Shown: positions 18,013 through 56,612 of the stretch, piece by piece
Position numbering within the stretch: the stretch's first letter is position 1
Layout of the letters: each line of letters opens with the position of its first letter
Source of the DNA: Selaginella moellendorffii
Lineage: Eukaryota > Plantae > Lycopodiophyta
Assembly (NCBI RefSeq): GCF_000143415.4
Contig: NW_003314330.1
Span: forward strand, 558,001-622,000
DNA length: 64,000 nt
Direction: 5' to 3'
Translations under genes and position numbers: made by a program
Notes under the pieces: model-generated
Seen by the model: the letters and a program-made list of their open reading frames with translations, nothing else
What the model was told of the DNA's origin: nothing
Databases searched by the model: none

Positions 18013-18118
18013 CATTGCTGTAGGATTCGATACTCAGAAAGAAAACACTTCTTTTGACATTTAAGAATGAGAAATCACATGACTTCACAGGAACTTCAAA
18101 CTTGGTTGACAACCAAAT

Positions 18119-32945: not shown

Positions 32946-35900
32946 GAGGGTGAAAGCCCAAAGCATTCGTCTCCCAGACTCTGGGGGGTTTGGTGAGTTC
33001 CAAAAGTATAGTAAGGGGGAGGACTGCAGTGGAGCCAGTTTGGCTAGGAAAGGCCAATTTGGCCCAGGAAGGCTATACCCAGGTGTTAGGTGATGAGTTG
33101 ACCACTGGGAAGTCCAAGACTAAAGTGAATACAGACCGACAAGTGGGGTAGCTTGGTAAAGTATTCAAGAGCCAGCTCTAGTTCCCCTGAGAGATCGACT
33201 GGTCGATGCTCCCAATCCAAGTGTGGGTGGCACTACCTACTTGGATACCTGGCGTGGCTCAACGGAACCTCGCTCTAAGCCCATGGCTAAAGCACCCAAA
33301 GGCGGAAGGCAAGGAAAGTACCCATGAGGCCCGCATAAAGCCACGGTGTTCTGAAATATTGTCCCAAAGTCCCAGACTATGGAAAGAAATAGGAGTAGCC
33401 CTTTGGTATGGCGACCAAGGACATAGTCACATAGTGAAGAAGTCCCAAAGGACAACGGGACTTAGTGGTCGGGCCTGTGGGTCTTGATCCATTGGCAGTG
33501 TTGGCAAACACAGCCATAGACAGAAAGGGACTTGGTGGGGACTGGAAAAGGGGTATTGGAAAAGGCTAATCCCTATGTTTGTGGGCATCCTAAGGATGCT
33601 AAGGAGTGGATCTGGGATGATCACTCATGGATGGATGGCCCAGTCCTTGAGAGACGAGACTATGATGCAAGTGGTGTTAGACCACCGGTGCAACCAAGGT
33701 GAAGGGGTATGGCCTTAGTGTAACAGGTTGATATGTTGATGGTACCTTGGGGTGTCGGTCATAGGATCGGACACGTGGAGCACTTGGACCAAGTGCAATG
33801 GTTGAGTGGCATGGATGCCATTCCTGGGGCTAGCAAGTCCCTAAGTCCAGAATAAGACTTACGGAGGTTATGAGTGAAACTCCTCCAATTAGTCGGAGGT
33901 GTGGTTAAATGACTAAAGTAGAATAGAAAATTTAGTCGCTTACAACTTGGTATCGGAGTTGTTCCTTAGTCAGACTCTTATTGGTGGCTAAATATATCAC
34001 CACTTGTATTGAAATTGGAAGGTCCTAGGTGTGGACCTATCCTCGAGGAGGAGCATGTTGAGAGGACATGGCTCTCCACTCAAGTTCATGTGTGAACTTG
34101 TGCATAATGTGTTGGATGGAAAAAGGCCAGTAAGGGAATGACTTTGGGATCTTGGGAACAGTATAAAGTTTCCTCAGAGAGCTGAGGATGTGATTCAGAT
34201 GAGCGTTTAACAAAGCAAACGTGTTAATGTAGTTGTGGTAAACAACTATAGTTGGGATCACGGGAAAGATGCAAACTCTAAAACAATAAAGGAGTCACAA
34301 GATTACCTTCATATAGTTGAGGTTGGTGCTCATAAAGTTGAGACCAGAATTGATGACCATGGGAGGTCAAATACAGAAGAGGACATAAGTCCTTGAAATG
34401 GTAGCCGGGGCTACCTCTAATAAATGCTGGAACAACCCAAGGAGTTGGGGGTGTACTTAAAGGATGAGCTGATATTCTCATCACATGGACAAGTGGTCAT
34501 AAAGGGCAAAAAGTTGCCTCAAGAGAACAAATCAAGTGTCGGAGTAACACTTGCAAAGATGGTCCTTGTGAGTAGGACATAAATGCATGAAGTTGTATTC
34601 TAGCGAGCTGACACTTCAAAAATAAGACCTTACGGGTCATTGGTTTACGAAAGTCCAAAAATGTTGGATGACTCAAGAAGAGTCAAAGAATGGTCCTAAG
34701 GAATTGAGAAAAACATTTAGATTGAGGTGTATGGTGCCCCACGAAGGATGGGGAGGATCGTAAGATCCAAGTATAAAAACAGTAGGTATCTCATGGGTGG
34801 CAGAATGTACCATAATAAAGTCGTGGGAAAGGTGTTCTTAGAAGAAACAACTTTGGCGCAGAGTTGTATGCAAACACTATGGTGCAGTGCTAATGAATAG
34901 TTGGTATGAGAAATGACTGGATTGGTCTTGGCAAAGACCTAGACACAAGTAAGAAGTGTCGTAGATGTAAGCTCGTGGAGCCAATGGTGTAGAAACACCG
35001 AATGTGCTAAGGCATGTTGCCTTGAGATCAAGTTGGTGAGTTCATGGGAACCCCTTTCAAAGGAATCCCAATGGAAATGGGAATGGCATAACTTAAGCTG
35101 GAAAACATACAATTAAAGTGTGGTGACCCAAATAATGATAGAGGTGTGGAAGCACCAACAATGAGTTGTAGGACTTGATAACTATGAGGCAACTAAGCAA
35201 AAGGTGCAAAATAATTGGTTAAACTAGTAAAAGGACCTAAAACTTTTTATTGGGATAAGGAAGTTAGATATACCCTTATAGGGGATGAATTGCTTATGTT
35301 GCGATATAGTAAATCAATATCATAAAGGGAATGTTCATTGTTAGAGAGGCCATCATTGGGACACCCAAACACTCTAAAACACTAGGAGGTGGTGTTTGGT
35401 GTCATGAGGGCAAAAGATAAGGCCTAAGGGACAAAGTCCCTAACGACTGATGGATAGAAGATGCTATCCAAACATCCAAGGTTGCAGAGATGGGAAAAGA
35501 CTATCTACTCGAATTGGACAAAGCCAAAATGGAATTTTGGGAAGGCTAATAATGGGCATATAGAGGCCCATAAGTAGCAACATGAATCCTGGTGTGTGGG
35601 ATTATAAGGTGAGCATGCCCAGATTGAGGAATCACTCCCTAAATTCTATTCACTCGAGCTCATGATATACCATTGGTCTCACTTGGGATTCTCATATGTT
35701 GCCTTGCATGCCATCTGTTCACAGTCACTCACCCACACACTATCTGATTTTCGTCCGATCAGATATTAGGTAGGTTCATCCCTATAAATACTTGTTAAGG
35801 CATGGTAGAAGGTGCAAAGTTATCCTCTTATTTTGGAGGAGAATAACCAAAGGAAGCATATGAGGCCAAAAGGCAAGTAGTATTGGGATGAAACTAAACC

Positions 35901-38479
35901 ATAGAAATCGAAGGGCATAACTAACAGTGGTTATACAAATCGGGAGTGGAGAATCAAGAGAGTGCTCAAGGATGTTGTTGCTAGCAACTGCGATGCTATG
36001 GAGAGTCTAAAATGTGGAATTATCCATGTTAGACCATATGGTGAGTAGGGAGCTTGCAAAAGAGAAGCCTTAACAAGTTAAGGAACAGAGTTCCTTAAAA
36101 GTTCCCAAAGACAATTCTAGGTGGATAAGTACCTAGAAAGCCAAGTGTAAATGGTTCCTAGAGCGTGCAAAATCAGAGTGGCACAACAGAACCGTGGTCT
36201 TGAATCTGGCCATGAGGCGAGGCTATTAAGGTTGGGGAAGTAGTTCCCAAGTGTTCAAAGAGAGGGTTTTGAACGAAAGTCGATGGTTAAGGACTTTCAC
36301 GCTTATGCATGAACCATGTTACGGTGGCCGGATAATTTGCTAAGTGAGATTGGCAAGTCAGGGGAACAAATCCCCTAGTCAAAGGTGCTAACTTCAAAAG
36401 GGGGCGGCCCATGAGGCTGAGCATGGAGGAGTCCATGCATGATCACAAACTTGCCAAGTGAGAGGACTTGGCAGTGCGGAGGAACTAGGTTCCTAAGCTG
36501 TGATCTATAACGCGCTTTAAATACATGTTGGTGCACCAGCGTGGGGAGTCATGCCAGGCATCTTGTGTGATGCCTTCCGTAGATGCATATACAGAGGTTG
36601 GGTTCGAGTCCCGACCCTCAAGTGCTTGGGTTCGAGTCCCAAATCACTAAGGCGTGGTGATGGTTTGGAATATGAGGACACTCATTTTTCGGTGGTCATG
36701 GACTCTCAGTGAGGAGACTAGTTTAGACACACTGCCAAGCGAGGGATGCCTCGGAATCGTGATGCATGGTTAAATTGCTTAGTGCGAAAGCTTGGCATAT
36801 CTAACTTGAATACTTTGGTGCAAGTGGCACCAAGGATGTGATGAGTGAGATGGGGACACTTAATCTCAGTTGCCATGGACCCTTGGCCGTAAGGGCTGAC
36901 TTGGGTGCACCGCCAAGTGTGGGGGATGCCCTCGGGGTCATGCTCAACAACTTAAAGGTCTAGAAGACCAAGTACCTCTTGGCAACTCTGTTAAGGTGCC
37001 AAAGTGTGATTACTAGGTAATCTTGTGGCTAAATAAGGATAAGGTCCTTGGTTGGGTAAGGAATGAAGTTCCTTGTTCAAAGTGTTAATTTGAACTGTTT
37101 ATGATAGTGTGGCTTGGTCAAGATGACCAAGTGGGAAGAGCACCTAAGGGAAATAAGCTGTGTCCATATGATGGCATAGTGAGTCTGAGGAAAGTAGTCT
37201 TTATAAAAGACCCATGGCATAAAACAAAGCTATAGCAGAAAATGATAAAGAGACATACTAGGGGTAAACACCCTTTAGCCTTGGCAAAGCAAAGTCTTTG
37301 CTATGGAACCGAAAGGATTCCTTGAGAATGGAGGTAGTGATCTGATGTTGCTGGGTGCAACAATCAAGGATAGGAGCAAAAGACTAGTGGCTAAGAAAAG
37401 AGTTATGGGAATCATGGGAAAGAATCCAAAAGGCAAAGTTAGGCCAAAAACACTAATGTGTTGTGTGCTAACGAATTGTGAGAAAGGCAATGTGTTTCCA
37501 AGGATGGATTCCCAATTGCTCTGATTTGCCGAAAGTGGAAGCTCCAAAGGAAGGAGCGGTAAGGTAGCCAAATAATAGGGCCATGGACAGGCCTAGCACA
37601 AATTATAATAACTAGAACTTAGTGCCCAAGATGGCACTAAATAAAGAGAGGATGATAATGCCCTCAAGTAGAGAACTTTTTAGGATGAGGAAGTGGAGTT
37701 GCACAATATGTGCAATGCAAGGTGTTGGAGACATCTAGGAAATTGACTTCGAGAAGTCAAAAGCAAAAGTTCCAAAGTGCAAAGGTTATATCGATGCAAA
37801 AATCACTTGTGAATTCCAAACATGCCTAGCACTAGGAATCACAAATAGATCTTTTTAATGATTGTAGAGGCTTTGAGCCTAAACAATACTGAATGAAGAA
37901 GCTCTTTTTGCAATTGCAATGGCTTAATGCCTAGACAATGCAAAAAAGTTTTTTAACCGTTTTTTAACCGTTACTGAGAAGGAGTAGTGGGATTGAGATA
38001 GAGACGGTGTTTCTAACAAATTAGCGAGAACTAAATTAAGAGCCACTAAAAGTGGTCCAACCAGTCTTTAAGTTGGAGAGACTATGCTCCTTAAAGGATG
38101 GGCAAGGCATGGTGAGCCTTTGGTATCAAACCAATGATGAATATTGGTGAAGTGCCAAGAATGGAAAGGGTAATACATGTTGGTATTACTTTATAAAATA
38201 GTTTATCATTTGATGAGGACATCAAACTTCGTTTATGGGTGGTGGAGTTGTGAGACACAAAATCCCTAGGCCCCAAAGTGGAGCCGAAAGGGTGCCACAT
38301 GGTAGTGGCCGAAGCGAAAGCCAAATGAGCGTAACACGTGTGGACTAAAAGCTCCGACTTGAAAGGTCGAGAGCTAGAGTGGAACTCCTAATGAAGTGCT
38401 CAAGGAATAAGTATGAAGTGAGCAATGAGTGAGTCTCTAGAAAAGGGACACAAGAGGACCAAAACATGACACGAGGAAG

Positions 38480-38962
38480 AGTCCGAGACGGACCCGAGAT
38501 GGAGTTTGAGATGGACCCGAGATGGACCCGAGATGGACCCGAGATTGAGTCCGAGACAAACCCGAGATGGAATCCGAGATGGACCCGAGATGGACCCGAG
38601 ATGGAGTCCAAGATGGAGTCCGAGATGGACCCGAGATGGACCCAAGATTAAGTCCGAGACAGACCTGAGATGGAGTCCGAGATGGACCCAAGATGGACCC
38701 GAGATGGAGTCCGAGATGGACCTGAGATGGAGTCCGAGATGGACCCAAGATGGAGTCCAAAGTCGAGACTGAGACCGAGACTGGAACCGAGACCGAGACC
38801 GAGACTGGAACCGAGACCGAGACCAAGGCTGAGGCTGAGACCGAGACCAAGGCCGAGGCCGAGACTGAGACCAAGGCCGAAGCTGAGACCGAGACCAAGG
38901 CCGAGGCCGAGACCGAGCCCAAGCTTGAGTCCGAGTCCAAGTCCGAGTCTGAGTTCGAGTCT
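38480..38962. repeat. Minisatellite/microsatellite inside the 3' LTR
   Basis: Same units as 32500-32945 with extra 24-bp GAGACC/AAGGCC blocks. Confidence 0.9.
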
Positions 38963-40770
38963 GAGAGGGTGAAAGCCCAAAGCGTTCGTCTCCCAGACCC
39001 TGAGGGGTTTGGTGAGCTCCAAAAGTATAGTAAGGGGGAGGACTGCAGTGGAGCTAATTTGGCTAGGAAAGGTCAGTTTGGCCCAGGAAGGCTGTACCTA
39101 GGTGTTGGGTGATGAGCTGACTACTGGGAAGTCCAAGACTAGAGTGAATACAGACCGACAAGTGGGGTAGTTTAGTGAAGTATTCAAGAGCCGGCTCTAG
39201 TTCCCCCAGGAGATCAACTGGCCAATGCTCCCAGTCTAAGTGTGGGTGGCACTACCTACTTGGATACCTAGCGTGGCTCAATAGAACCTCGCTCTAAGCC
39301 CATGGTTAGAGCACCCAAAGGCGGAAGGCGGGGAGAGTACCCATGAGGCCCGCGTAGGGCCACGGTGTTCCAAAATGTTGTCCCAAAGTCTCAGACTGTG
39401 GAAAGGAAGTGGAGTAGCCCTCTGGTATGGCGACCAAGGACATAGTTACATAGTGAAGAAGTCCCAAAAGATAGCAAGACTTAATGGTTGGGCCTGTGGG
39501 CCTTGATCCATTGGCAGTGTTGGCAAACACGGCCATGGACAGAGAGGGACTTGGTGGGGACTGGAAAAAGGGTATTGGAAAGGGCTAATCCCCATGTTTG
39601 TGTGCATCCTAAGGATGCTAAGGAGTGGATCTGGGATGATCACTCATAGATGGATGGCCCAGTCCTTGAGAGACGAGACTGTGATATAGATGGTGTTAGA
39701 CCACCGGTGCAACCAAGGTGAAGGGGCATAGCCTTAGTGTAACAGGCTGATATATTAATGGTACCTTGGGGTGTCAGTCATAGGATCGGACACATGGAGC
39801 ACTTGGACCAAGCGCAATGGTTGAGTGGCATGGATGCCATTCCTGGGGCTAGCAAGTCCCTCGGTTCAAAACAGGACTTACGGAGGTTGTGAGTGAGACT
39901 CCTCTAAATGGTTGGAAGTGTGGTTAAGTAACTAAAGTAGAATGGAAAATTTAATTGCTTATAGCGAGATCTAGACAATGCAAAAAACTAAATTTAAACC
40001 AAAATCCTTAAGGGAAGAACAAAAGAAAAGAAATGGAAAAAGCTAAATCTAAACCAAAATCCCAAATTCAACCACTCTTCAGGGACAATCAAAGGTCTCA
40101 CCTCCACCAATGTGAGTGCTTGGAATATGGAAAGGAATATAGAAAATGTGCATATCAATTAGCCTAAAAACCTTAGCTTATATACAAGAGCGAGTGGTCC
40201 GGATTGAAACCAATTCGACGGCTACCAAAATTCCATTACGCTAATATTAGTATACAGCATCGTAGCCGTACACTTGGCCCTCACATGGTTAGTAAACTAT
40301 TTTTTAAAATACTATTGTTTAATCAAATACTGCATATATTATCATAGTTTTTCTGATAATGAGTTAAATTGTAAATAGCTAAGGCTATATATAAAAATAT
40401 AATATGTACTTTATTGTTAAAGTTGTTTAATGTTTTTGTATTAACACTTGAAGCTTTAATTATGGTTTTACACATTTATAAAATTAAATCAACCCACATT
40501 TGATATACCATCACCTAGTGTTGAGTTTTATATATTTTAATGATATTTAGATAGGTCATCTGTACAGAATATAATCTTCTTATTATATTTGTAAATAATG
40601 TAAAAATTAAATTATAAAAGTTAATTTTGACATAAACTATTCAAATATTATAATAATTTATAGAAAAGAATATTTTTATGTAAATTTGATTATTTTATTC
40701 TTAAATAATTAAAAATAAAGTTATTCACATAAAAAATATTCACTCTCTTGGGTAACCGGTTAAACAAAAT

Positions 40771-41230: not shown

Positions 41231-42299
41231 AACTCAGAAATTACACCCTCTTCCGGTGCTACTTCTGGGTATCCGCAGATGAAATCGATCAGCCTTCCTT
41301 GCCCATACAATGGCAAGGGATCAAGTACAGGCCAATCTTAAGGATCCTAGCAAAGAAATCTAGAAAAAAATCACTTTTTATTTTCCATGCTAGAACTCTT
41401 CTCTTACCTTGGAGGTGAGGATTGTGGCGTCCTGTTCCAAGAAGAGAGTCATGTGGCTTGTGAGATTGAAGCATCTGGTGAGCTGATTGTTGTGCCTCCC
41501 AGCTCGCCAAAGCTGCCAATGTGATCGATCGCCTTCTGGAATGCCTTGGTGTTAAGTGTGATCCCATCAATCAGTCCCCAAAAATCAACAATGGAGAAAA
41601 TGTGTGGCTGTGCCATACCAGCCTGCTCTCCTCGCTGTTGCATCCCTAGATAGCCAGCAAGCAATCACCGAGCAGGAATAGCAATGGCGATGCATTCTTC
41701 ATAATGCTTTCTTTGCTCAATGGTCAATACATTTGCATGTGACATGTGTCGCAACACCTTCTTCCCTCGCCCCAAGCAGCTTGGCTGCCTCCCATTAGCC
41801 GAGAGCATTAGCATGATTATTTGCTAAGATGTGGTTAAAAAAATAACCCTTTTACAGTTACCTCTATCTGACGCTTGCCATTGGCTAGATCTGGCAGCCC
41901 AGAAAGTTCGGCACTCCCTCATTATGATAGATTGAGGGAACCCCTCCAAATAGTAATATTCTTAAAATATTCTTAAACACTCCCACTTATAACAGCTGTC
42001 TAAATTGGTTAGAGCGATTTTTTATCATAAAATATAAAGAATTCTGTAACTCACTCACTTAAACAGATTTTAAAAATTAGAAATTAGTGAAAATGTAAGT
42101 TACAACCATCCTGGATTAGAAAATTCCACATCTAACCTAAATAAAGTTATAATACTAACAATAATTAAAGGCTCAATGTTTCAACATCTCAAGCCTTTTT
42201 ATCAATCCAAGTTTTTTTTCTTCTTTATCTTAGGCAAGTTGGACAAGATTGAGGCATTGGCAGAGTCGTATTGGTAGATTTTGTAAGATTAGTAAGGGA

Positions 42300-42362
42300 A
42301 ACATACTTAAAGCTGGAATCAAACAATGACAGCCCAAGTTTAGATTAATATCAGCATGAACC
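42300..42362 (-). pseudogene. 3' end of second CVNH-like gene, split by a 2.35 kb insertion; continues at 44712-44748
   Basis: VHADINLNLGCHCLIPA here and LTADCKKTNGAM at 44712-44748 are contiguous in the duplicate at 50670-50760. Confidence 0.65.
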
Positions 42363-42566
42363 GAATTCACCCACCTGCAAATCCAGAGCTCTTTCAGAAA
42401 AAAAGAAATTTGGGAAAGAAGAGCCAGCAAACAAACTAACTTGAAAGATGTCTTGAACCAGTGGAGCAATTGAATGAGAAAAAAATGCTTCTCTTCTTCT
42501 TTGGTTGGCTGGATCTTCCCTTCCTTGAGAAGAACAAAGAAAATCAAGGAAGAGGAAGAAACAAGC

Positions 42567-42755
42567 GGCCTCGAGCTCGCCCATCCCGACGTCCTGGGAG
42601 TTCACGAGCTCCACATATGGTCCGTGACCATGGGCAAAGTTTTGCTGTCGTGCCATGTCGCTGTGAAGCACGACGCTGATGCCGACTTGGTTCTCCAGAG
42701 ACTGGTCGAGTACTGCGACCGGGATGTCGAGAGAATGGATGTGGATCATGTGTAG
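42567..42755 (+). pseudogene. C-terminal fragment of a CDF/MTP (MTP1-type) metal transporter
   Basis: DVLGVHELHIWSVTMGKVLLSCHVAV..DADLVLQRLVEYC; no upstream TM domains. Confidence 0.75.
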
Positions 42756-43017
42756 AAAAATCTCTTTTTTTCACTTTTTCTTGAGCGATATGACACTGAG
42801 GTGAGGAGTAAGAAATGCAAGACTACTATGTAGCCAAAATTTATATGATTGTGCTGGTTAAGGTGGTTATAATAAGCGTTGATTGGGTTATCAGAAACCA
42901 TTTTTACCGAACATGGCCATGCCATACATGGCTATTCCATACAAGGAAATCTATTCCATATTATAAAACCGGAGAATACCACAATCGTAGAAGTAAGATA
43001 GAAGTTCTAGTTGAGAG

Positions 43018-44326
43018 ATGGAAGCATTCAGGGTTCTTGTCATTGTTTTGGTTGCATGCATCTCGATATCCCAAGCTGCTAGCACGAATCCTCCAGTACA
43101 AGGCCTGTTTGTTTTTGGGGACTCAGCGTTAGATGGAGGACAGAACACGTACATCCCGGGCTCCAAGATTGTTAGCGCAATTCCACCATATGGAAAGACG
43201 TACTTCAGCAAGCCAACAGGGCGTTGGACGGATGGTAGAACGATTGCTGATTTCCTGGCTCAAGCACTAGGCCTTCCATTGTTGCCACCTTTCCTCGAGC
43301 CTGGCGCCAACTTTTCCAGTGGTGTGAACTTTGCATCTGCCGGTGCAGGCTTGTTAGATGAAACGAATGCCCATCAAGTACGTATACTCCTGTATTCCCC
43401 TCAGAATTAGTTGATTTTGATTCATTCTTTTTATCAGGGAGTTATTTCAATGAAGCAGCAGCTGCGCCAGTTTCGCAACGTCACAAATGAGTACAAAAAA
43501 GGGAAGGGTGTGGAGTTTACGAACCAGCTCTTGCGCAATTCAGTGGCATTGTTTAGCATGGGAGCTAATGATATTGCTAATGCTGTTCCCAGCTCATTCT
43601 TGTTCCAGGAGATGATACAAGCATATTCAAGTGCTATTCAGGTACTCAAGTATTACATTCACTAACTTCAAAACCTTTGGATTTCTCTTTTGATTTATAG
43701 GAAATTTACAATTATGGCATTAAGCATATCATAATTCTGCTAGCACCACCAATTGGGTGTACTCCTAACTTGAGAGCAGTATCAGCACAAAGCAGGAATA
43801 CCAATTTAACTCCAGAGGGCTGCATAGGAATTATTAACAATCTTGTGGATTCATATAACACTAAACTCTTGAATCTTGCTGTCAAGTTACACAATGACTA
43901 TCGTGACTTGAACATTGCAACATTAAATCCATCTCCAATTATAATGAACGTGCTAAGGAATCCTGAAAAATACGGTAAGAAACACTAATTATCTCTCCAT
44001 TCTATTCATTAATATTTGTGTGTGTTCATCTAGGTTTCAAAGAAGCAGAAAAGGCATGTTGCGGTGGGGGGCCATTTAATGCAGCAGAATTTTGTGGGGA
44101 TGCTGATAAACATGATTGGAAGCCAGATCACAAAAATAAATACATTAAATTCATATGCAACAATCCTAAGGATTACTTATACTTTGATAGCAACCATTTC
44201 ACTGAAGCTGGTTATTGGTTTGTGATGAAGAATTTTTGGCATGGATCTTACAATATTGCAAGACCCAGCAACCTCAACTTCTTTTTTCAGGGGTTTAACA
44301 TTCCAAACCCACCCTCAGCACCTTAA
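43018..44326 (+). CDS. GDSL esterase/lipase, secreted, 4 exons (~43018-43377, 43438-43641, 43701-43974, 44034-44326)
   Basis: Signal peptide; FVFGDSALDGG, PTGRWTDGR, GVNFASAGAG, MGAND, PPIGC, ACCG and FDSNHFTE (DxxH); GT-AG introns in phase. Confidence 0.93.
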
Positions 44327-45215
44327 AAGTTTGTAATTTTTTTCTTATAAAACATTTCTTTTAGATGAAGCTTACCACATGTATCAATGTCCTTAACATT
44401 AACAACCTCATGCAGTGGAAGGTTGAAAGGATTTTAAAATCAATCTTTTAGATTAAGAAAAAGAACAAAGCTGAGGCACTGGATTAAGGTTTTACTCCGA
44501 AGGGGGTTCTAATCCCACTCTCAACACTAGTTCGTGATGATAAATAGTTTTGATCGTAAAAGTTGTAGGCAATGGTAGGTAAAACAAATGCTGTTGTTAA
44601 TTGTGAATGTAAAAGTCTATGGAGGAAAGGTGGAACCTCGACGTTTTTACAGTCTCTCTTACGGCCGCAAATTGGAGCCTGCGTCAATGAGAGAGTTTGA
44701 GGGTAAACACGCATGGCTCCATTTGTTTTCTTGCAATCTGCAGTGAGTGGAGCGTCGCAGGAGTCCCTCCTCAAGATTGAGAGCAATGGTTTTTGTGGGG
44801 AGAGCTGGACAAAGCAACATGGATAAGCTATGGAGCACGGATAGGGGGCAATTAAGATGCTGAAGAACCTCTCAGGTGATGATAGGGCAGATGATCATCC
44901 AAGCGGCAAAACACAGGCTGCTCCATCAGAGGAGCAGACCCCTTCACGACAAAGGCATATTCCACCCTATTCATTTGTGCTGGGATAGGGGAGCGAAGTT
45001 GGCATTGGAGTGCTTCTATTCTCATGCACATAATCCATAAAGGTCATGGAATATAGGTCAAAGTGTCTTTTTCATGGTTTACATTTACCCTTATTAACAG
45101 ATAATTAGATCTTTTTCTTACGCGGAATCGAACCTGGACCAAGTCCCTCCTAGGGTGGAGGGAGCTATGGGAGCTGCCACAGGGGCAAGAGCAGGCGCAG
45201 GGCTGGGGCGCCGCG

Positions 45216-47355
45216 ATGGCGAATTCTCGCAGCGCTACCCGGCGGCGGCGGGAGAGCGGCGCATTGGCGTGTATGATCTCCGCCGAGGTAGGCGCAGTGC
45301 TGGCCACAATGCGGCGCAACAGCCGCTGGGCCGGGAGGTATGAAGAGCAGCTGGATCACTCCCTGATCTATTCCCTCAAGCTCCTGAGGCGATCTATCTT
45401 CAGCTGGACGAAAAAGCCCTGGAATTCCATCAATCCCTGCCTCTACCTCGCGCCTTTCCTGGATGTGGTGAGATCGGACGAGACAGGCGCCCCAATCACT
45501 GGCACGGCTCTCAGCGCGGTCTACAAGATCCTCACCTCGGATGTGTTTGATCTCCGGACCAGCCATGTCGACGAGGCGATGCATGCGATCGTCGAGTCCG
45601 TGACGAGCTGCCGGTTTGAGGTCACGGATCCGGCGTCCGAGGAGGCTGTGCTCATGAAGATCTTGCAAGTTCTTCTGGCTTGCATTGGCGGTGATATGGG
45701 GGCAGTGCTCGGGCACAGGGATGTTTGCAACGTTGTCAACACGACCTTTCGGGTGGTTCATCAGGCCGGGAACAAGAGTGAGCTCCTCCAGCGCGTGGCC
45801 AGGCACACCATGCACGAGCTCGTGAGAGCCATCTTTGGGCATCTCTCCAGCATGGATCCTCTCGCCGGGAACAATGGTTTGCTTGTTCCATGGAGCAACG
45901 TCGAGAACAATGTCGGTGTTGTAAGTTCCTCGTTCTCCTCTTTTTTTTCTTTGCTTGGTTTGTTTCGTTTGTTTTCTTCCTCTTGTCCGCTGTGAATTCT
46001 TCTTTCTCTTTTTGCTGAATTTCTAAGACCGTCCCTTTCTTCTTTGCTCATTTCCAATTGACTTTTACAGTTTCCTCTCGATCGTCTCTTTCTCTCTTTT
46101 TTATTCTCATTTTTTCGTTTGCACAGATTCGCTATCATCAAGGACTACAGCAGCAGCAACAGCAAATCTTGTCTCATCTAAGTCTTGGTTTGTAGAAACT
46201 CTTTGTTTTCTCGTATGATTTTCACGAGCTTTTCTTGCTTTGCTTTTCTTTTCTTCTTTGTGTATAGCGCAACAATGTGGACTTGTTAAGAAGCCCAGAG
46301 GGGAGTTGACGGAAGAAGAGTGGCGAATCGCTCGCGAGCAGTCGATGGCGAGGAGGGACGCACTGCATGGCTGTCCAATTTGTCACGAAATTTTTATTCG
46401 TGGAGACCAGGTAAGTAAGTGGTCTCTTGCAAAATGGCCACAATCTTTAGTTTTCTTTTATTTTCTTTCTTTCTTTGCAGCTTTTACTCAGCTGCTCTCA
46501 TATCTTTCACAAGGTTTGGAGCTCTTCACGGATGGTCTTTTAGTGCCACGGAAATCACATCAGGGTGCCAATATTTGCAGCAATGCTTGAAACGTTTTGA
46601 GAAGTTCTCAAGGCAACGCTGCTGCCCGGTGTGCCGGACCGAGCACTATCAAACCATGGCCGTGAGGATACCATCGACTTTGTACAAGAACTTCTTTGCA
46701 ACAAGGCATGGAAATTCCTTGTTGCTTTTATGATCAAAGCGAAGTGTTTTTTTTTTTTTCCGAAGGATACAGACGGCGTACAGGGCTTACAAGTGTCGGA
46801 GAGACTACGCTGAGTACAAATGGAGACATCCACCTGAAGATCCAGGCAAACGAAAGGAATGGTTTGCAAAAAAGGTAGTTTTTTTCTTTTTGCATATTTC
46901 TTTTCTCTCTAACCTGTGTGAGCATCAGCTTGAATCGGCTTCAAACAGACTGCTGGATCAAATGGCTGTAGACGAAGACAATGTGAAGCTCCTCTTGGCC
47001 AGCATCGACAACACTCTGGCCAGTAGTAAGCAGATTTACGATGTTCTTGGCAGCAGAGATCAAACGAAGGAGGTGGACAGTTTAAATCTTACTGAAGAAA
47101 GCGATCTTAATTGGCACCAAGTGATCGAAAAGGTACGTTCTTTCTTGCATCTATCTCAAGCTTATCATTATTTTCCAGGCTATTGAGAGATATGACATTG
47201 ATCGTTCCATTTGCATAATGCCGCTGCAAAAGGATGGAGGATCCAACCTTAGCCTGCTCAGCTGCAGCCACTTATTCCATAGCCATTGCATCTCGGAGTT
47301 TGAGGCGTTCCATGCATCGGCAGAGCTCTTATGCCCGATTTGTAGAACCATGTAA
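45216..47355 (+). CDS. Putative chimeric gene: GNOM exon 1 (DCB domain) spliced to RNF32 exons 3-9, predicted 518 aa
   Basis: Exons 45216-45920, 46127-46187, 46268-46410, 46481-46513, 46581-46705, 46766-46874, 46929-47132 and 47179-47355 total 1557 nt, open to TAA. A phase-0 donor meets a phase-0 acceptor. Expression unknown. Confidence 0.55.
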
Positions 47356-47841
47356 AAGAGGTTCGACTTGTAGCAATTCGATACTCAGAAAGAAAACACT
47401 CCTTTTGACATTTAAGAATGAGAAATTACATGACTTAACAGGAACTTCAAACTTGGCTGATAACCAAAATTTAATTCAGGATTGGTTGACAAGCAAATTT
47501 AATTCTGGCTTGGAACGTGAAAAGGTGGTCCTGGGATGTGAAATGGTGGAAAACTGGAAGGAGGGAAATGGGAACCAGGGTGAAATGGTGGAAGATGGCC
47601 GGTCCTGGAATGAAAGGGGGAAAATTGAATGGTGGGAACTGGCCACCAGGTGCTCTTGGAATAGAAGGGGGAAAATGAAATGGAGAAAATATGTAAATGG
47701 CAACATTAATGTTATAATAAACAACCATGAAAGAAAGAAAGTAATATAGCTTTCTTGCATGATAATATAGTTATAAAAATAAAAGAATGAAAATGCAACT
47801 TAAATCATATCAATATAGTTATAAAACTTAATTTTGAAGCT

Positions 47842-48136
47842 TGAGAGATGGGATTGTGATGCAAGTGGTGTTAGACCACCGGTGTGACCAAGGTAAAGGG
47901 GCATGGCCTTAGTGTAACGGGCTGATATGTCGGTGGTACCTTAGGGTGTCAGTCATGGGATCGGACACGTGAAGCACTTGGATCAAGTGCAAAGGTTGAG
48001 TGGTGGGGACGCCATTCTCGGGGCTAGCAAGCCCAAGTCTGAAATAGGACTTATGGAGGTTGTGAGTAAGACTCCTCCAAGTGGTTAGAGGTGTGGTTAA
48101 GTGACTAAAGTAGAATGGAAAATTTAGTCGCTTACA
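47842..48136 (+). mobile_element. 3' fragment of the 1.7-kb LTR family (cf. 33647-33944)
   Basis: GATGCAAGTGGTGTTAGACCACCGG...AATTTAGTCGCTTACA. Confidence 0.85.
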
Positions 48137-48519
48137 ACATAGTTTTTACCTATAGTGATTTACTATAGGATAACCATGAAATAAAATTTAAACCTTCTAT
48201 GTGCCATGTGTCATATGCCACATGTCTAAGGACAATAGTGTGGAACCTAAGTTTCAAAGCCTTGGGCTACTAAATGAAGGAATGGAGCCAAACTCCTAAG
48301 CATGTAACAAAGGAGCGAAGGTACTAAAGCACATAATGACTCTCGAGCATATAGCCCAAGGAGTGAAAAGACAAAAGCACAAAGTGATTTAGAATAGTCT
48401 TAGAACATCCAACATCCTAATGTTAGAATCAACATGTCAAACGGAGCTAAATAAAATCTCCCCCCCCCCAATTTGAACATATCAATGGTCTGAGGATAGG
48501 GGTATTCCATTAACTAACA

Positions 48520-49238
48520 TAGTGTGGAGCTTGGGTTTAAACCCAAGCTAAACATAGAACAAAGATATACATATAAGTAAAAGTTAAATTATACTTTAGA
48601 TTAGTTAATCATGCCTGATATACCCACTATCCCTATTATACATTTGGAAAGCACCCCCCCACCATCCCTTTAGGAACACGTTTGGGCCTTCACCTTTAGC
48701 CACCTTTAATACCAGGAGTTAGTCTTTGGGACTAATTCGAAACTTACTAAATATGGAATTGCATTAATTTGTGAATTTTGGCATGGGATGAACACCATTG
48801 TGTTTAGGACAATTTTTACATTCCGTAGATATGCCAAATTAGCAAATCTAAACACTTTCCATAAATAGCAATTAAAACCAAATAGTACTAACACAATGTG
48901 CATAATAGCAAGGGTGTTTGGCAAATACAGTAAGCTATCATCCAATAATATTAAGGGACTAGTCTCAATATGAAAGGGTTTTTGTCAAGCTAGTGCAAGA
49001 TAGAACAAAAGAGAACTAAGAGCTAGGCCAAATATGCTCAGTAAGAAAACATAAAAATTCTTACCTGATGTTCATTTGGCTAAATATAGGTGATAAGCCT
49101 AGTTTATTAACACTTAAACAAAAGGAACTAATAAAAGGTCCAGTAATACTAAATTCCTACCGTTGTAGCAGTAAAGAAAGAATATTCAAAAGGACTAACC
49201 GATAAGTAACTTTTAATACCTACAGTCACATTTGCAAC
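48520..49238 (-). mobile_element. Degenerate fragment of the chromovirus LTR (cf. 27622-28300)
   Basis: AGTGTGGAGCTTG..., GAACACCATTGTG, GGTGTTTGGCA, ending GTCACATTTGCAACA. Confidence 0.8.
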
Positions 49239-49954
49239 AAAGATAAAAAGTTAACTAATGAATATCATTGTTATTAGATATTGCTTACACTTTGGACTTG
49301 CTAACTAGTTTAAAAATTCATTTAATGTTCCATATAAACAAGTGTAACATGTTTACACTCTTGTGATATCGTAGATAAATTAATCATCCAAATCTTAGAG
49401 ATTGATGTTAAGAATGTTAGTCTAGCCAATATATTTGCTTTAAGGTTAGTGAAAATACATTGCAAAAAAAATTAGAAATTATACATAGATGAGGCTATAA
49501 TGGGAAAATATGTAACACGTTTGGATTAAGAGCTCTTGATGGAATGGTGGAATGTGGCTTGAGGGTGGCCAAGCATATCCTGGATGGTGAGGAGATGCAG
49601 CATGAGGAACCTGAGTTTGTAAGCTTTTTCCTGCTGAATCAAGTAGAAGAGCATGCTCCTTCAGCAACGTTCGGCTGCCACTCACTTGCAATGCATTGAG
49701 AAAGATAAACACTTTAAAGATAAGCATTGAAATGATTTGAAAAGCCATCACAACTCAAATGCTTTCATCTAATCACTCAATTTATATTGGAGTCCAATGA
49801 GTTTAGACCACTAACTTAATTTGGCTATTATTATTTGATTATTTGGTTGTTCCAAATTCTACTCTTTATTGATCCTGTTTTATTATTCTAGATATGATAT
49901 TGATTATAATTCCCCTACTAAAGGATGGAGCTAGATATATCACTAGAGATATAC

Positions 49955-50356
49955 TTAAACTGGGATCAAACAATGACAATAATCTATCCTCCAGCCAGAG
50001 TAGAAGTTTAGATCAATATCAGAGTGAACCATGGTTCCATGTTTCTTCTTGCAATCCTCATTGAGCACTGTTTCAGACATGGAAGGATTGGAACGTGAGT
50101 GGAGTTCTTTGAATCCTTCTGTAAGGTGTCCATCATCGTTTGTAATGCATTAGTTTGAATCTATAAACGTCGCCTTTCCCTTTGCCGCTATCTTCTGGGT
50201 GGGCTTAACAAACTTAAAATCGGAGCATTTCTCCAGCCCACCACATCCCTGTAAGAATTTTGTTACCACTGGATTAAATAGCGAAGTGAGAACCACGTGA
50301 AGTGCCATGGCAGTGAAGCTATGGAGCACCAGCAGAGTTACAAAGAGTAGAAACAT
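49955..50356 (-). pseudogene. CVNH lectin gene with a single in-frame stop
   Basis: MFLLFVTLLVLHSFTAMALH..GCGGLEKCSDFKF..ATFIDSN*CITNDDGHL..HSRSNPSMSETVLNEDCKKKHGTMVHSDIDLN; TAA at 50150-50152 where the paralog at ~20280 has GAA. Confidence 0.72.
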
Positions 50357-50669
50357 TTTTCCTGGGCGACGACAAAGAAACTTAAGAATGATCAGGTAAG
50401 TCACCAGGTTATAAGCATTACCATCTAGGCAAATTTGCAATAGTTTGACACATGGTACAAAAATCAATAGTTAGAACCATCCTGGATTAGAAAATTCCAA
50501 ATCTAACCTAAATAAAACTATAATACTAAAAATAATTAAAGGCTCAATGTCTTGATCTCAAGCCTTTTTATGAATCCAAGTTTTTTTTTTCTTTATTTTA
50601 GGCAACTTGGACAAGATTGAGGCATTAGCAGAGCGGTAGATTTTGTAAGATTAGTAAGAGAAACATACT

Positions 50670-50880
50670 TAAGCTGGAATCAAACAATGATAGCCCAAGT
50701 TTAGATTAATATCAGCGTGAACCATGGCTCCATTTGTTTTCTTGCAATCCGCAGTGAGCACTGTTCCAGACATGGAAGGATTGGCATGAGTGGAGTAAAC
50801 TGTCTTTGAATCCTCATCATTTGTGAGGCAATTGTTTGGATCTGCAAACGTGCCATCCCGTGAATTGCACTGCTATGGAA
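50670..50880 (-). pseudogene. Second CVNH-like pseudogene
   Basis: QCNSRDGTFADPNNCLTNDED..SGTVLTADCKKTNGAMVHADINLNLG; no intact 5' part found. Confidence 0.68.
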
Positions 50881-51635
50881 TACGCAACTTTACCTCCAGA
50901 TAAAGTTCGAGATAATAGCCGCCATTGAAATATAAGCAAAGGTGTGCTGCTGCCGTGGTTTGCAAGGGTTTATTGGGTGAAGGCGGTGGAGGCACTCTGC
51001 CAAGTTCTTGTCTTTAGGCATTGTGTTGGATTGAATCGGTAGGCTCCCGGATACATAGAAAAGGTCAGCGGGTCATTTCAAAGACGCCCAGCTTCTTGTT
51101 TTTTTTTTTTTTTTCTTTCTTTTTTCCGAGATGGCAATGACACTCAGCTCGATTCAAGGAGCTGTTCGGCAGGCCTTTGCATGACTATATTTTGTGCGTT
51201 TGTGACTGGAGCGTCGCAGGACTTCATCCTCAAGATCGAGAACCTCTTGGAGCTGGACAAAGCAACATGGATAAGCTATGGGGGTTAATTAAGACTCCGA
51301 AGAACCTCTCAGCAACAGGTGATGATAGGGCAGATGATGGCTGCTCCATCAGCCCAAAGGCGTAAACCACCCAGTTCATTTGTGCTCGGATAGGAGTAAC
51401 TAGAGGAGCAAGAAGATGGCATATGTAAGACTATCCGTACAGGAGATTAGCATATGATCCATAAAGGTCGTTTTATAATATAGGTCAAAGTTAGGTCTTT
51501 CGTGGTTTACATTTACCCTTATTAACAAGATTTTCTCTTACGCGGAATCGAACCTGGACCAAGTCCCTCCTAGGGTGGAGGGAGCTGTGGGAGCTGCCAC
51601 AGGGGCAAGAGCAGGCGCAGGGCTGGGGCGCCGCG

Positions 51636-54600
51636 ATGGCGAATTCTCGCAGCGCTGCCCGGCGGCGGCGGGAGAGCGGCGCATTGGCGTGTATGATCTC
51701 CGCCGAGGTAGGCGCAGTGCTGGCCACAATGCGGCGCAACAGCCGCTGGGCCGGGAGGTATGAAGAGCAGCTGGATCACTCCCTGATCTATTCCCTCAAG
51801 CTCCTGAGGCGATCTATCTTCAGCTGGACGAAAAAGCCCTGGAATTCCATCAATCCCTGCCTCTACCTCGCGCCTTTCCTGGATGTGGTGAGATCGGACG
51901 AGACAGGCGCCCCAATCACTGGCACGGCTCTCAGCGCGGTCTACAAGATCCTCACCTCGGATGTGTTTGATCTCCGGACCAGCCATGTCGACGAGGCGAT
52001 GCATGCGATCGTCGAGTCCGTGACGAGCTGCCGGTTTGAGGTCACGGATCCGGCGTCCGAGGAGGCTGTGCTCATGAAGATCTTGCAAGTTCTTCTGGCT
52101 TGCATTGGCGGTGATATGGGGGCAGTGCTCGGGCACAGGGATGTTTGCAACGTTGTCAACACGACCTTTCGGGTGGTTCATCAGGCCGGGAACAAGAGTG
52201 AGCTCCTCCAGCGCGTGGCCAGGCACACCATGCACGAGCTCGTGAGAGCCATCTTTGGGCATCTCTCCAGCATGGATCCTCTCGCCGGGAACAATGGTTT
52301 GCTTGTTCCATGGAGCAACGTCGAGAACAATGTCGGTGTTGTAAGTTCCTCGTTCTCCTCTTTTTTTTCTTTGCTTGGTTTGTTTCGTTTGTTTCTTCCT
52401 CTTGTCCGCTGTGAATTCTTCTTTCTCTTTTTGCTGAATTTCTAAGACCGTCCCTTTCTTCTTTGCTCATTTCCAATTGCCTTTCAGGCGAGGTCTCTCT
52501 TTTTTACGTTCCTTGCGTGACTAAACATTCTGTTTCTTCCTTTTGGACAGGAAGCTGATATTGACGCGCCCGACTTAAGCATTGTCGGTGTAGACTACCT
52601 TGGAAACGGGAATGCCGAGCTAGCTACAGGCCTGCTGGTGAAAGTTAGCGAGGAAGGGAAGCTGAGAAACGGAGAAGAGGAGCAGAGGACAATAGAGCCA
52701 TACGGAGTTCCATGCATGGTGGAGATATTTCACTTCCTGTGTTCTCTCTTGAACATGGTCGGGCCGTATGGTCTCGGCGAAAGTCTTGGTGGCACCGACG
52801 AGGATGTTCCACAGTTTGCTCTCGCGCTTATCAACTCGGCCATCGAGTTTGGTGGTCCGTCGTTTGGAAAGCACCAGAGGCTAATAAGTTTGGTTCGAGA
52901 CGAGCTCTTCCGGAACCTCATGCAAATGGGACTGTCGAGCAATCCCATCATCCTCTCGATGGTCTGCAGCATTGTGCTCAACCTCTACCACCACCTTCGC
53001 AGCTACATCAAGCTCCAGCTCGAGGCGTTTTTCAGCTTTATCATCATGCGGCTGGCACAGGGAAAGTTTGGGGCCTCGTACCAGCAGCAGGAGGTGGCTA
53101 TGGAGACACTGGTTGATTTCTGCCGCCAGCCAAACTTCATGCCCGAGATGTATGCGAACTTCGACTGCGACATTACGTGCAGCAATACTTTCGAAGAGCT
53201 CGCAAACTTGCTCTCCAAGAGTGCTTTTCCCGTCAACTGTCCGCTGTCGGCAATGCACGTTTTGGCCTTGGAGGGACTTTTGGCCATCATACACAGCATG
53301 GCGGACAGGGTAGACTCGGTTCCAGGTTCTCCACTGGAGCCCCCGACGTTCCTCGAGATACAGGCGTACGTTCCATTCTGGAACATGCGTTGCGACGATT
53401 ACAAAGAACCAAGCTCCTGGGTGGAATTCGTTCGGAAGCAGAAGTATATCAAGAGAAGGCTGATGATAGGAGCTGATCACTTCAACAGGGATCCGAAGAA
53501 GGGGCTGGAGTTTCTGCAAGGAATCCACTTGCTTCCCGAGAAACTGGACCCCCAGAGCGTAGCAAGCTTTTTCAGGTACACGACTGGGCTTGACAAAAAC
53601 CTGCTGGGGGATTTCTTGGGTGACAGAGACGACTTTTGTCTTCAAGTTCTAGCGGAATTCACTCGGACGTTCGACTTTAGCAGCACCAGTCTAGATGCGG
53701 CACTTCGGACTTTCTTGGAGAGCTTCCGGCTACCTGGGGAAGCGCAGAAAATCGAGAGGGTCATGGATGCATTCTCTCAGAGGTACTGCGAGCAGTGCGT
53801 CAATGTTTTTGCGAACAAGGACGCTGCTTTCGTGCTCGCATACTCGGTGATAATGCTCAACACAGACCAGCACAAGCCCCAAGTAAAGAAGAAGATGAGC
53901 GAAGACGACTTTATCAGAAACCTCCGTGCTGCAAACGGTGGAGTGGATTTTCCTCGGGAGATGCTGAGCGAACTCTATCAGTCAGTGGCGAAGAACGAGA
54001 TCCGAATTTCATATGATCTCGGGGCGGGCATTCCCGAAATGACACACAGCAGATGGCTCGACTTGATACGAAGGTCCAGGAAGACAAGTCCTTACATCGT
54101 CTGCGACTCCCGGCCTTTCCTAGATCACGACATGTTTGCGATCATGTCGGGTCCGACGATAGCCGCAATCTCAGTCGTCTTCGATCACGCGGAGGACGAG
54201 GAAGTTTTGCGAGGATGCCTGGATGGATTCCTCGCTGTCGCAAAGATATCCGCCAGCCACCACCTTGAGGACATCCTCGACGATCTCGTGGTTTCGCTGT
54301 GCAAGTTTACCACGCTCTTGAACCCGACTGCCTCGATGGAAGAACCAGTCCTGGCTTTCGGGGAGGATAGCAAGGCAAGGATGGCTGCAGTGACAGTGTT
54401 TACTATTGCCAACAAGTACGGCGACTTCATCCGTAATGGCTGGCGAAACATACTCGACTGCATACTCCGACTTCACAAGCTCGGGTTGCTTCCTTCTCGT
54501 GTCACGAGCGATGCAGCGGATGATACAGACGCGGCGAGTGAGTCTCAGGGGAAGATGATAGCCGGCGGACTTTCAGTGCCGCCTCTAGTCTCGGCTGGAG

Positions 54601-56156
54601 TTCGACGACGTTCTTCCGGACTGATGAGTAGATTCAGCCAGCTCCTGTCTCTGGAGGCCGACGAACCGAGGTCTCAACCGTCGGAGCAGCAGGTTGCAGC
54701 TCACCAGAGAATTCTCCAGACGATCGAGGCATGCCACATTGACAACATCTTCTCCGAGAGCAAGTTCCTGCAAGCCGAGTCGCTCTTGCACCTCGCGAAG
54801 GCGCTCATCTGGGCAGCAGGAAGGCCACAGAAAGGTACTAGCTCTCCCGAGGACGAGGACACCGCCGTATTCTGCCTCGAGCTTCTCATCGCGATCACCT
54901 TGAACAACCGGGACCGTATACTCCTCCTCTGGCAAGGTGTTTACGAACACATGGCTGGGATCGTCCAGACGACAGTCGTTCCATGCCTTCTCGTGGAAAA
55001 GGCGGTGTTTGGCCTGCTGAGGATCTGCCAAAGGCTGCTGCCTTACAAGGAGAACCTGGCGGAAGAACTCCTGCGGTCACTGCAGCTGATACTGAAGCTG
55101 GACGCGAGAGTAGCCGACGCTTTCTGCGAGCGCATCACGCAAGAGGTCATGCAGCTCGTGAGAGCAAACGCTGGACACATCAAGTCTCCCATGGGGTGGC
55201 GGACGATATCGTCGCTCCTGTCGATCACAGCTCGCCACCCAGATGCTTCGGAGTCCGGTTTCGAGGCACTGTACTTCATCATGCACGACGGTGCGCACTT
55301 AACTCCGGCAAACTACGTTCTTTGCCTCGATGCTGCTCGAGCTTTCGCTGAGACTCGCGTCGGCGGCGTCGAGAGATCCCTGAAGGCTCTGGACCTGCTG
55401 TCTGAATCAGTGAACTCGCTCATCAAGTGGTCTCAAGTGGCGACTGGGGAATCGGACGAGAACAAGGAAGACAGCGTGAGAGCCTCGCAGGAACTGGCGG
55501 AGATGTGGATCCGGCTGGCTCAGGGGCTGCGAAGAGTTTGCGGGGAGCAGCGGGAGGAAGTGAGGAACTGTGCCATCCTTTCGCTGCAGAGATGCCTGAC
55601 AGCGGCGGAGAGCTTGCACTTGCCAGCCATGGTTTGGATCCAGTGCTTCGACCAGGTGATCTTCGTGATGCTGGACGACCTCCTGGACATCGCTCTTAGG
55701 AACTCTCCGAAGGAGTACAGGGGGATGGAAGGCACGCTCCACCACGCCATGAAGTTTTTGTCCAAGATCTTTCTCCAGTTTCTGGATCAGCTCGCGCTGC
55801 TACCAAACTTCCGGGCCTTGTGGCTGGCGGTGCTGAGCCGGATGGAGATGTACATGAAGGCCCGGCTGCGAGGCAAAGGCAGCGACAAGCTCCAGGAGCT
55901 CGTCCCGGAGCTGCTGAGAAACATACTGCTGATAATGCACGCTCGCGGTGTGCTGGTCCAAGGCAGTACGTTGGGAGGAGACAGCTTGTGGGAGCTCACT
56001 TGGCATCACGTCCAGACGATATCTCCGGCGCTCCAGCCAGATATCTTCCCGGATGAGAAAGCTTCTTCCACACCATCACCAGCACCAGTGACACCAGCGG
56101 TCTCGCAGGCAGTGGATGATCCAGCAGAGCAGCAACCAGCGGAGCAAGTCGAGTAA
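51636..56156 (+). CDS. GNOM: ARF guanine-nucleotide exchange factor GNOM (GBF1 class), exons 51636-52340 and 52551-56156
   Basis: DCB (MRRNSRW, APFLDVVRSDETGAPIT, CRFEVTDPASEE), HUS (YANFDCD), Sec7 (FRLPGEAQKI, YSVIMLNTD) and HDS domains; intron in phase 0. Confidence 0.97.
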
Positions 56157-56612
56157 ACAAAGAGGTACACTCGATGTTTTTTTTTTCTACTTTGAGGGAG
56201 ATAGATCTTCTTTTGACTTTGTTGGTGAGTTTGCAGTGAAGCGGGGAGTTTGTAGAGAAAACGGCGCGAAGTGTTGTACGGAATTCGCTTGCGCGGCAAA
56301 CTGGTCAGTGATATTTGCTCTTTGTTTTAGAGTCCTGGACTGATCTGTAAATCTTCCAGCTACGCACATCCAAACTTCATATAGAAAATCCAGCCTCGGC
56401 TTTAAACTTTTTCGTGTTTGACTGTTTGTATAGTATCAAACAAAGCAAACAATTCTACTTCTGAAAAAATGCAGCTTTGAGATCCAAAATATTGGCTAAT
56501 CGCATTATTGCCATTAAAAATAAAATCTAAGAATACAACAAGGCTAAAAATTGTAATTTTGGATTTGCTCCATAGCTTAAAAAGACTCATTTAGTTGAAA
56601 ATCTTAGGTGAG

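Follow-up and report, generated by a model that had tools for sequence, protein, structure and literature searches.

The 64,000-nucleotide (nt) stretch of Selaginella moellendorffii DNA analysed in this study (hereafter the window; assembly GCA_000143415.2, scaffold GL377634.1, about 558001-622000) contains, in this order, a full RNF32-like gene (16529-18012), a fusion gene in which a copy of GNOM exon 1 precedes RNF32-derived exons (45216-47355), and a full-length GNOM gene (51636-56156). Self-BLAST of the window and a repeat finder identified five blocks that recur on the same strand and in collinear order: 16710-18307 with 46069-47683, 18388-18710 with 49535-49857, 20132-20599 with 50004-50473, 42098-42362 with 50469-50723, and 45026-46065 with 51450-52484 (97.4% identity). 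Five collinear blocks are the layout expected of a tandem duplication reaching from intron 2 of RNF32 to intron 1 of GNOM, of which the first copy spans 29 kb today and the second 6.4 kb. An initial annotation of the window had proposed that a chimeric gene arose at the junction of such a duplication, and both the blocks and the alignment across the junction bear this out. The fusion is transcribed; as argued below, it probably yields a truncated product consisting mainly of the GNOM DCB domain and is likely to be a near-neutral by-product of the duplication.

The first exon of the fusion (45216-45920; like all features of this gene, on the + strand) is a 705-nt copy of GNOM exon 1 that comprises 235 codons, ends in GTT|gtaagt and differs from exon 1 of full-length GNOM in a single codon (A8T). 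It is followed by a chimeric intron of 206 nt (45921-46126), which joins the start of GNOM intron 1, of which about 140-150 nt are taken in, to the end of RNF32 intron 2, and which closes with a phase-0 acceptor, cag|ATT, at 46127. In the parental gene, RNF32 intron 2 is a GC-AG intron (ATG|gcaagt) and the breakpoint at 16710 sits 4 nt inside it. In a three-way alignment, GNOM homology reaches ...ACAG at 46070 and RNF32 homology opens with AG at 46069.

Further evidence comes from Logan contigs, examined over 44700-47900 in three RNA runs from three studies (X1, X2 and X6) and in one DNA run from 2024 (X13), which represents a different genotype judging by its alleles. As assembled contigs, these data drop minor variants, and contig depth is a poor measure of expression. 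X13 shows loose contig ends at 46064, where the run's GNOM intron allele reads ...TTGACTTACAGGCGAGG, and at 46069; this allele, which contains ...TTGACTTACAGG..., indicates that ...TTGACTTTTACAG in the fusion is GNOM intron sequence. The switch from GNOM intron 1 to RNF32 intron 2 had thus been correctly recognised, but the 8-nt filler ACTTTTAC reported between the two is probably part of the GNOM intron. Judged from these alignments, the DNA junction probably lies at 46069-46070, where the GNOM intron and AGTTTCC of RNF32 intron 2 have a 2-nt microhomology, AG, in common.

Downstream of the chimeric intron, the fusion carries copies of RNF32 exons 3 to 9. Exon 3 (46127-46187) is defined by the contig joint 46186>46267 in runs X1, X2 and X6, by the RefSeq protein and by alignment with orthologues; its donor at 46187 yields the conserved LSLAQxxGLV motif, and the same motif and RefSeq protein rule out an alternative donor at 46181, which would give 516 amino acids (aa). 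Exon 4 (46268-46410) contains the start of the first RING domain, RING1 (CPIC), and exon 5 (46481-46513) encodes LLLSCSHIFHK, with RING1 ligands 3-5. Intron 5 (46514-46580) is 67 nt long and contains an in-frame TAG at 46541-46543. Exons 6 to 9 occupy 46581-46705, 46766-46874 (IQ motif), 46929-47132 and 47179-47355 (RING2), and are followed by a 3' untranslated region (UTR) at 47356-47451, with contigs of the three RNA runs ending at 47413-47451, so that the RNF32 3' end is used. Conceptual splicing of every intron, with the donor at 46187, gives a frame of 1557 nt and 518 aa and reproduces the 235-codon exon 1, its GTT|gtaagt boundary and the phase-0 acceptor as originally described.

The RNF32-derived coding part differs from its parent in 13 codons, with 7 synonymous and 6 non-synonymous changes. 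One of these, TGT>CGT at 47203, replaces the first Cys of RING2 with Arg, so that RING2 does not retain its eight zinc ligands; this Cys is invariant in 10 of the 10 aligned family members. Another, TAC>TAA at 47353-47355, removes the last 6 residues, including a conserved Tyr after the last Cys pair. Codon comparison therefore agrees with the initial annotation on both RING2 lesions. The X13 run has the parental state at 10 of 11 scorable coding differences, which places the changes, including the Cys-to-Arg replacement and the new stop, on the fusion copy. Pfam RING matches fall in the last exon of both RNF32 copies. In addition, a G>A change at 46417 turns the donor of intron 4 into a tandem donor, GTAAGTAAGT (46411-46420).

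Both the DNA junction and splicing across it are found in RNA. The joint 45920>46127 (GT..AG), which had been predicted from the DNA, is present in runs X2 (depth 51.8) and X6 (depth 179) and agrees with RefSeq protein XP_024515282.1, while an unspliced contig of run X1 (45892-46187) crosses the junction with 0 mismatches. An assembly error, in which two haplotypes were mis-joined so as to mimic a tandem duplication, deserves consideration because the assembly keeps the two haplotypes of a heterozygous clone as separate scaffolds, because the copies differ by 0.3-2.8%, within the range between haplotypes here, and because X13 lacks the junction. However, there is no gap at the junction and there are no Ns in the whole window, the X1 contig derives from an independent RNA library, GNOM exon 1 is found spliced to RNF32 exon 3, with fusion alleles, in RNA of X2 and X6 from different studies, and RefSeq built the same join. 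Since RNA contigs extend across the junction, an assembly artefact is essentially excluded. RNA from an ordinary RNF32 allele that happens to carry the fusion variants was also considered and rejected, as an unbranched contig of 1045 nt in run X2 runs from the last 30 nt of exon 1 through exon 9 to 47451, and both X13 haplotypes are parental.

The fusion allele is the one present in the RNA contigs at all diagnostic coding sites, where the parental RNF32 allele has zero depth in the three runs, with the caveat that contigs drop minor variants and low parental expression is possible; by contig alleles, the fusion is more abundant than parental RNF32 in these samples. Depths of the RNF32-derived exons relative to exon 1 were 51.8/234.6 in X2, 179-226/781 in X6 and 8-13/69 in X1, or roughly 0.12-0.29 of total exon-1 depth, as far as contig depth can be used for this purpose; the fusion would thus account for roughly one fifth to one quarter of the RNA in which GNOM exon 1 is present. 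GNOM exon 2 (52551-56156), which encodes the HUS and Sec7 domains, lies outside the fusion transcript contigs. In run X6, which is filed under a different organism label (organism B), the fusion transcript occurs without a mismatch; the sample was probably either mislabelled or taken from the same clone under a second name.

The splice pattern determines what the fusion can encode. Positions 46479-46702 are contiguous in contigs of X1, X2 and X6, with intron 5 kept at full depth, and no joint 46513>46581 is listed in the contigs of the three RNA runs. Splicing removes every other intron, the GC-AG intron at 46706-46765 among them, as seen from the contig joints 46702>46763 (GC-AG after a shift within a 4-nt ambiguity), 46872>46927 and 47130>47177. 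RefSeq gives the same picture. A length-tuned protein search with exon 1 retrieved the 323-aa XP_024515282.1, named "GNOM isoform X2", and the same locus has two sister isoforms, XP_002985642.2 (340 aa) and XP_024515283.1 (312 aa). All three carry T8 and the V235|IRYHQ join (...NNVGV to IRYHQGL...), and all three end in or after the retained intron 5, which isoform X2 enters directly, X1 after a +4 shift at the 46417 donor that alters the frame, and X3 via an acceptor at 46514. The dominant product would therefore be about 323 aa long, with a 235-aa DCB region and an 88-aa tail made up of the RNF32 linker, then C-x2-C...C-x-H-x2-H, and finally nine residues encoded by the intron. Of the eight zinc ligands of RING1, five precede the TAG at 46541-46543 and the last three lie downstream of it; all eight occur together in the conceptual fully spliced frame only. 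The IQ motif, IQTAYRAYKCRR, is intact in the DNA and in spliced exon 7, yet it too lies downstream of the stop. The statement that RING1 and the IQ motif are intact consequently applies to the conceptual 518-aa frame but not to the dominant product, and the contigs of three runs together with three RefSeq isoforms contradict the DCB::RING-IQ-RING protein that had been envisaged.

The initial annotation went further and suggested that a 518-aa protein could dock on GNOM through its DCB domain and act as a GNOM-directed ubiquitin ligase or as a dominant negative. The conceptual frame is indeed open for 1557 nt, RING1 with its eight ligands and the IQ motif are intact relative to family members, all introns other than intron 5 are spliced, the GC-AG intron included, and the ratio of non-synonymous to synonymous changes on the fusion branch is somewhat under the neutral expectation. 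However, removal of intron 5 was observed in no contig of the three RNA runs and in no RefSeq isoform, RING2 lacks its invariant first Cys and has lost the conserved Tyr after the last Cys pair to a stop, the gene is hemizygous and missing from a further sample, and the conserved N-terminal motif of RNF32 has been replaced: NA(V/A)ALQDH, encoded by parental exon 2 upstream of the breakpoint, has no counterpart in the fusion. A ligase would depend on one functional RING and on some mRNA being fully spliced, as a minority form, and this reading is very improbable. Translation would end within RING1, and the untranslated RING2 is in any case missing a zinc ligand; the sequence argues against ubiquitin transfer as an E3, and such an activity is unlikely.

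The remaining candidate for activity is the DCB domain. The Pfam DCB match in exon 1 scores 21.8 bits, under the cut-off of 25.6; in a PDB sequence search, exon 1 matches Gea2 as well as the BIG1 DCB structure 5ee5. In an AlphaFold model built from 41 aligned sequences, the predicted local distance difference test (pLDDT) score exceeds 90 over residues 11-215 and is below 50 for most of the tail. The confidently modelled part superposes on the N-terminus of yeast Gea2 with a root-mean-square deviation of 2.2-3.1 Å over about 200 columns, and also on the isolated BIG1 DCB. The structural match to both indicates that exon 1 encodes a whole DCB domain that can stand alone. Compared with GNOM/GBF1-type ARF-GEFs (guanine nucleotide exchange factors for ADP-ribosylation factors), such as Arabidopsis GNOM and yeast Gea2 (PDB 7URO/8EZJ), the fusion has the complete N-terminal 235-aa DCB but lacks HUS and Sec7, both of which are encoded in GNOM exon 2, as well as HDS; the product would thus have no exchange activity and is not a GEF. 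The Arabidopsis DCB fragment binds a second DCB as well as the remainder of GNOM, membrane association being supported by the contact with the remainder, and in GNOM-type GEFs of plants the DCB-DCB interaction is of ancient origin (10.1101/2025.06.03.657657; 10.1101/2021.09.14.460214). By analogy with that work, binding of a free DCB to GNOM is plausible, and a decoy effect on GNOM is mechanistically possible.

It is conceivable, then, that the fusion is maintained by selection as a decoy, a stable 323-aa protein that would compete for DCB-DCB contacts and for contacts between DCB and the remainder of GNOM (DCB-deltaDCB) and thereby modulate GNOM dimerisation or membrane association. Exon 1 corresponds to the fragment for which Arabidopsis assays show binding to itself and to the remainder of GNOM, independent folding of the domain is predicted in the manner of the crystallised BIG1 DCB, the transcript is fairly abundant, and the exon 1 copy is 99.7% identical to that of GNOM. 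Against these points, the fusion is hemizygous and absent elsewhere, its mRNA has features of a target of nonsense-mediated decay (NMD), and the intron and 5' flank are just as nearly identical as exon 1, in keeping with gene conversion and not with selection at the protein level. With respect to NMD, a stop codon upstream of exon junctions is the classical configuration of an NMD substrate, and three exon junctions lie downstream of the TAG at 46541-46543, so the fusion mRNA would be expected to be a target. A selected decoy is consequently unlikely. Similarly, it is doubtful that a stable free DCB with a half-RING tail, produced behind the ancestral GNOM upstream region, titrates the DCB-DCB or DCB-deltaDCB contacts of full-length GNOM. 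If it did, a lycophyte would possess a naturally occurring modulator, specific to one allele, of how an ARF-GEF dimerises and is recruited to membranes, and the locus would offer a natural experiment, already set up, on the role of the DCB domain.

The fusion is confined to one haplotype of the reference clone. The GNOM allele XP_024535027.1 is found on another scaffold, GL377589.1, and in 24.5 kb of this alternate haplotype (L002, no Ns) a GDSL-lipase gene leads directly into GNOM without an insert, with L002 6137-10850 matching window 41354-46065 and L002 9717-14816 matching window 51355-56452. No counterpart of the RNF32 3' copy is present in these 24.5 kb, and the fusion is thus hemizygous in the reference clone. 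In the X13 contigs, only the parental continuations are found at 46064 and 46069, together with only parental alleles; depth is about diploid, at 17-21, which equals the sum of the run's own heterozygous bubbles. On this contig evidence, X13 does not carry the duplication.

The two halves of the duplicated unit have diverged from their partner copies to very different degrees. Over the GNOM 5' block (45112-46060) divergence is 0.32%, compared to 2.42% over the RNF32 block (46071-47450), an eightfold difference (p = 2e-5). Over 45116-46060, the two window copies group as sisters, one with 2 changes of its own and the other with 1, and 8 changes and an indel set the alternate haplotype apart as the outgroup. 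The uneven divergence of the two halves points to a crossover between haplotypes that had diverged or to gene conversion in the region of GNOM exon 1, and the history may have followed one of three courses: an older duplication with later gene conversion across 45112-46060, unequal crossing-over between haplotypes that were already divergent, or a template switch when the fusion arose.

The region upstream of the fusion (44216-45215), which lies downstream of the GDSL-lipase gene, has a history of its own. The near-identical block common to the fusion and full-length GNOM begins only at 45112, at the start of repeat family D1. The 1 kb upstream of the fusion is 89% identical to the upstream region of the alternate-haplotype GNOM over its full length, whereas the upstream region of full-length GNOM (50636-51635) matches the alternate haplotype (L002 9001-10000) in a patchy manner at 78%. 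Near-identity is limited to about 104 nt in front of the ATG, and a further 280 nt or so are 78% identical. By these comparisons, the fusion has kept the ancestral 1-kb GNOM upstream region that full-length GNOM has mostly lost on this haplotype, and the two GNOM alleles may be expressed unequally. In line with the initial annotation, transcription of the fusion takes place with a copy of the GNOM upstream region in front of it, and in fact with the ancestral copy.

These observations can be combined into a probable history. On one haplotype of the reference clone, the segment from intron 2 of the RNF32-like gene to intron 1 of the downstream GNOM would have been duplicated in tandem, and the second copy would later have been shortened and invaded by repeats. 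At the resulting junction, RNF32 exons 3-9 with their 3' end would have come to lie behind the ancestral GNOM upstream region, exon 1 and about the first 150 nt of intron 1, in a unit that is transcribed and from which the hybrid intron is precisely removed. With the 67-nt intron retained within RING1, the main frame would end at 323 aa, and the IQ motif and RING2 would have become part of a 3' UTR, where decay is visible. The fusion would accordingly represent a young, segregating and largely neutral by-product of a structural variant; if its protein accumulates, the sole plausible activity would be DCB-mediated binding to GNOM, not ubiquitin ligation. An expressed, hemizygous fusion with a truncated DCB product and a decaying RNF32-derived 3' UTR, most likely near-neutral, is the explanation that we consider probable.

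Several points weigh against this explanation. The ratio of non-synonymous to synonymous changes on the fusion branch is about 6:5, compared to a neutral expectation of about 4:1 (binomial p = 0.02-0.05), which leaves room for some constraint on the RNF32-derived exons and would be unexpected if they were purely 3' UTR, a borderline result. The dN/dS comparison of the duplicate RNF32 exons that the initial annotation called for has thus been computed (pN/pS 0.22), but with 7 synonymous and 6 non-synonymous differences and a borderline p value it decides neither way. Intron 5 is 100% identical to the parental intron (17153-17219), so that no lesion explains its retention. A fully spliced mRNA encoding 518 aa could exist as a minority, since contigs drop minor variants, and the absence of the duplication from X13 likewise rests on contigs.

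Intron retention may also have an older origin. A mammalian RNF32 transcript that reads through a donor is reportedly truncated inside the first RING-H2 domain (PMC12317687), and by analogy the retention of intron 5, which splits RING1 after ...SCSH(V/I)FHK, may be conserved and regulated.

The locus is a lycophyte case of a known class of chimeric genes that form at the boundaries of tandem duplications and that, in populations of Drosophila yakuba and D. simulans, are often segregating and show new expression patterns (PMC4069613, PMC5460883). The layout is the same: a duplicated span starts in one gene and ends in its neighbour, and at the junction the downstream gene contributes its upstream region and 5' part and the upstream gene its 3' part. 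Shared features are also a variant that segregates or is hemizygous and a new expression pattern of the exons captured. In contrast to the Drosophila chimeras, the host is a lycophyte, about 20 kb or more has since disappeared from the second copy compared with the first, the two halves are very unevenly diverged, and the frame is cut by intron retention. Literature searches found no published description of this locus. Its interest lies in documenting plant exon shuffling by tandem duplication while the product is still hemizygous, with both parents in cis, the state before the duplication still to be seen on the other haplotype and RNA showing precise use of the hybrid intron. The functional stakes appear modest, as the ligase idea fails and a DCB decoy is a possibility suggested by analogy.

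These results also affect database entries. The RefSeq proteins named "GNOM isoform X1-X3" are products of the GNOM::RNF32 fusion and not isoforms of GNOM, and counts of ARF-GEF genes or of GNOM isoforms in Selaginella will be misled by this name. The true full-length GNOM of the window (51636-56156, + strand) consists of exon 1 (51636-52340) and exon 2 (52551-56156), encodes 1436 aa and is a 100% match to XP_024515281.1, with Pfam matches to HUS, Sec7 and TPR_28 (GBF1-type TPR) in exon 2.

The parental RNF32-like gene (16529-18012, + strand) was rebuilt as a model of 9 exons and 327 aa, two of its introns being GC-AG introns, and aligned with nine relatives obtained by an exhaustive profile search. 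The alignment identifies an N-terminal NAVALQDH motif, LSLAQxxGLV, a RING-H2 domain, an IQ motif, a helical spacer and a second RING-H2 domain. Mammalian RNF32 is a testis-enriched protein of 362 aa with an IQ motif between two RING-H2 domains (PMC12317687), and the parental gene shares this whole architecture together with the conserved N-terminal and LSLAQ motifs. It is apparently an intact RNF32 orthologue, an assignment based on architecture, motifs and the description in PMC12317687, as most family members are unnamed proteins of protists and sponges and their names are of no help. The fusion also carries RNF32 exons 3-9, and the mammalian gene likewise has a RING1-truncating read-through transcript; unlike RNF32, however, the fusion lacks the N-terminus, its dominant mRNA stops in RING1, and its RING2 lacks Cys1 and the C-terminal tail, so that as translated it is not an RNF32-type double-RING protein. 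On GL377634.1, the parental gene is annotated solely as a 104-aa fragment (P0124), and a query with residues 236-314 of XP_024515282.1 returned the fusion alone and no annotated parental RNF32 protein. A lycophyte RNF32 orthologue with the full double-RING/IQ architecture therefore exists but is essentially unannotated. Selaginella sperm are motile. Together with the testis enrichment in mammals, this makes a sperm-specific role of RNF32 an idea worth testing.

The remainder of the second duplicate copy (47683-51531) consists of a repeat-derived insert (47683-49535) and shrunken collinear remnants of the RNF32-GNOM intergenic region, and the lipase gene has been lost from it. Within the insert, 47803-47900 is a very high-copy repeat, with a depth of 6444 in X13, and matches the ends of 1.7-kb repeats at 33646-33946 and 39665-39961. 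No large transposon open reading frames (ORFs) were found between the duplicate copies. A stretch of 13.8 kb (26483-40288) is missing from the alternate haplotype; it is bounded by 176-nt direct repeats (26483-26658 and 40111-40286, 94%), contains a 1.7-kb direct repeat pair (32262-33942 and 38244-39961, 87%) and resembles nested or decayed long terminal repeat elements with no long ORFs left. Elsewhere in the window, 3274-3668 is a tandem pair of 198-nt units in perfect register (3274-3471 and 3471-3668) with 99% identity.

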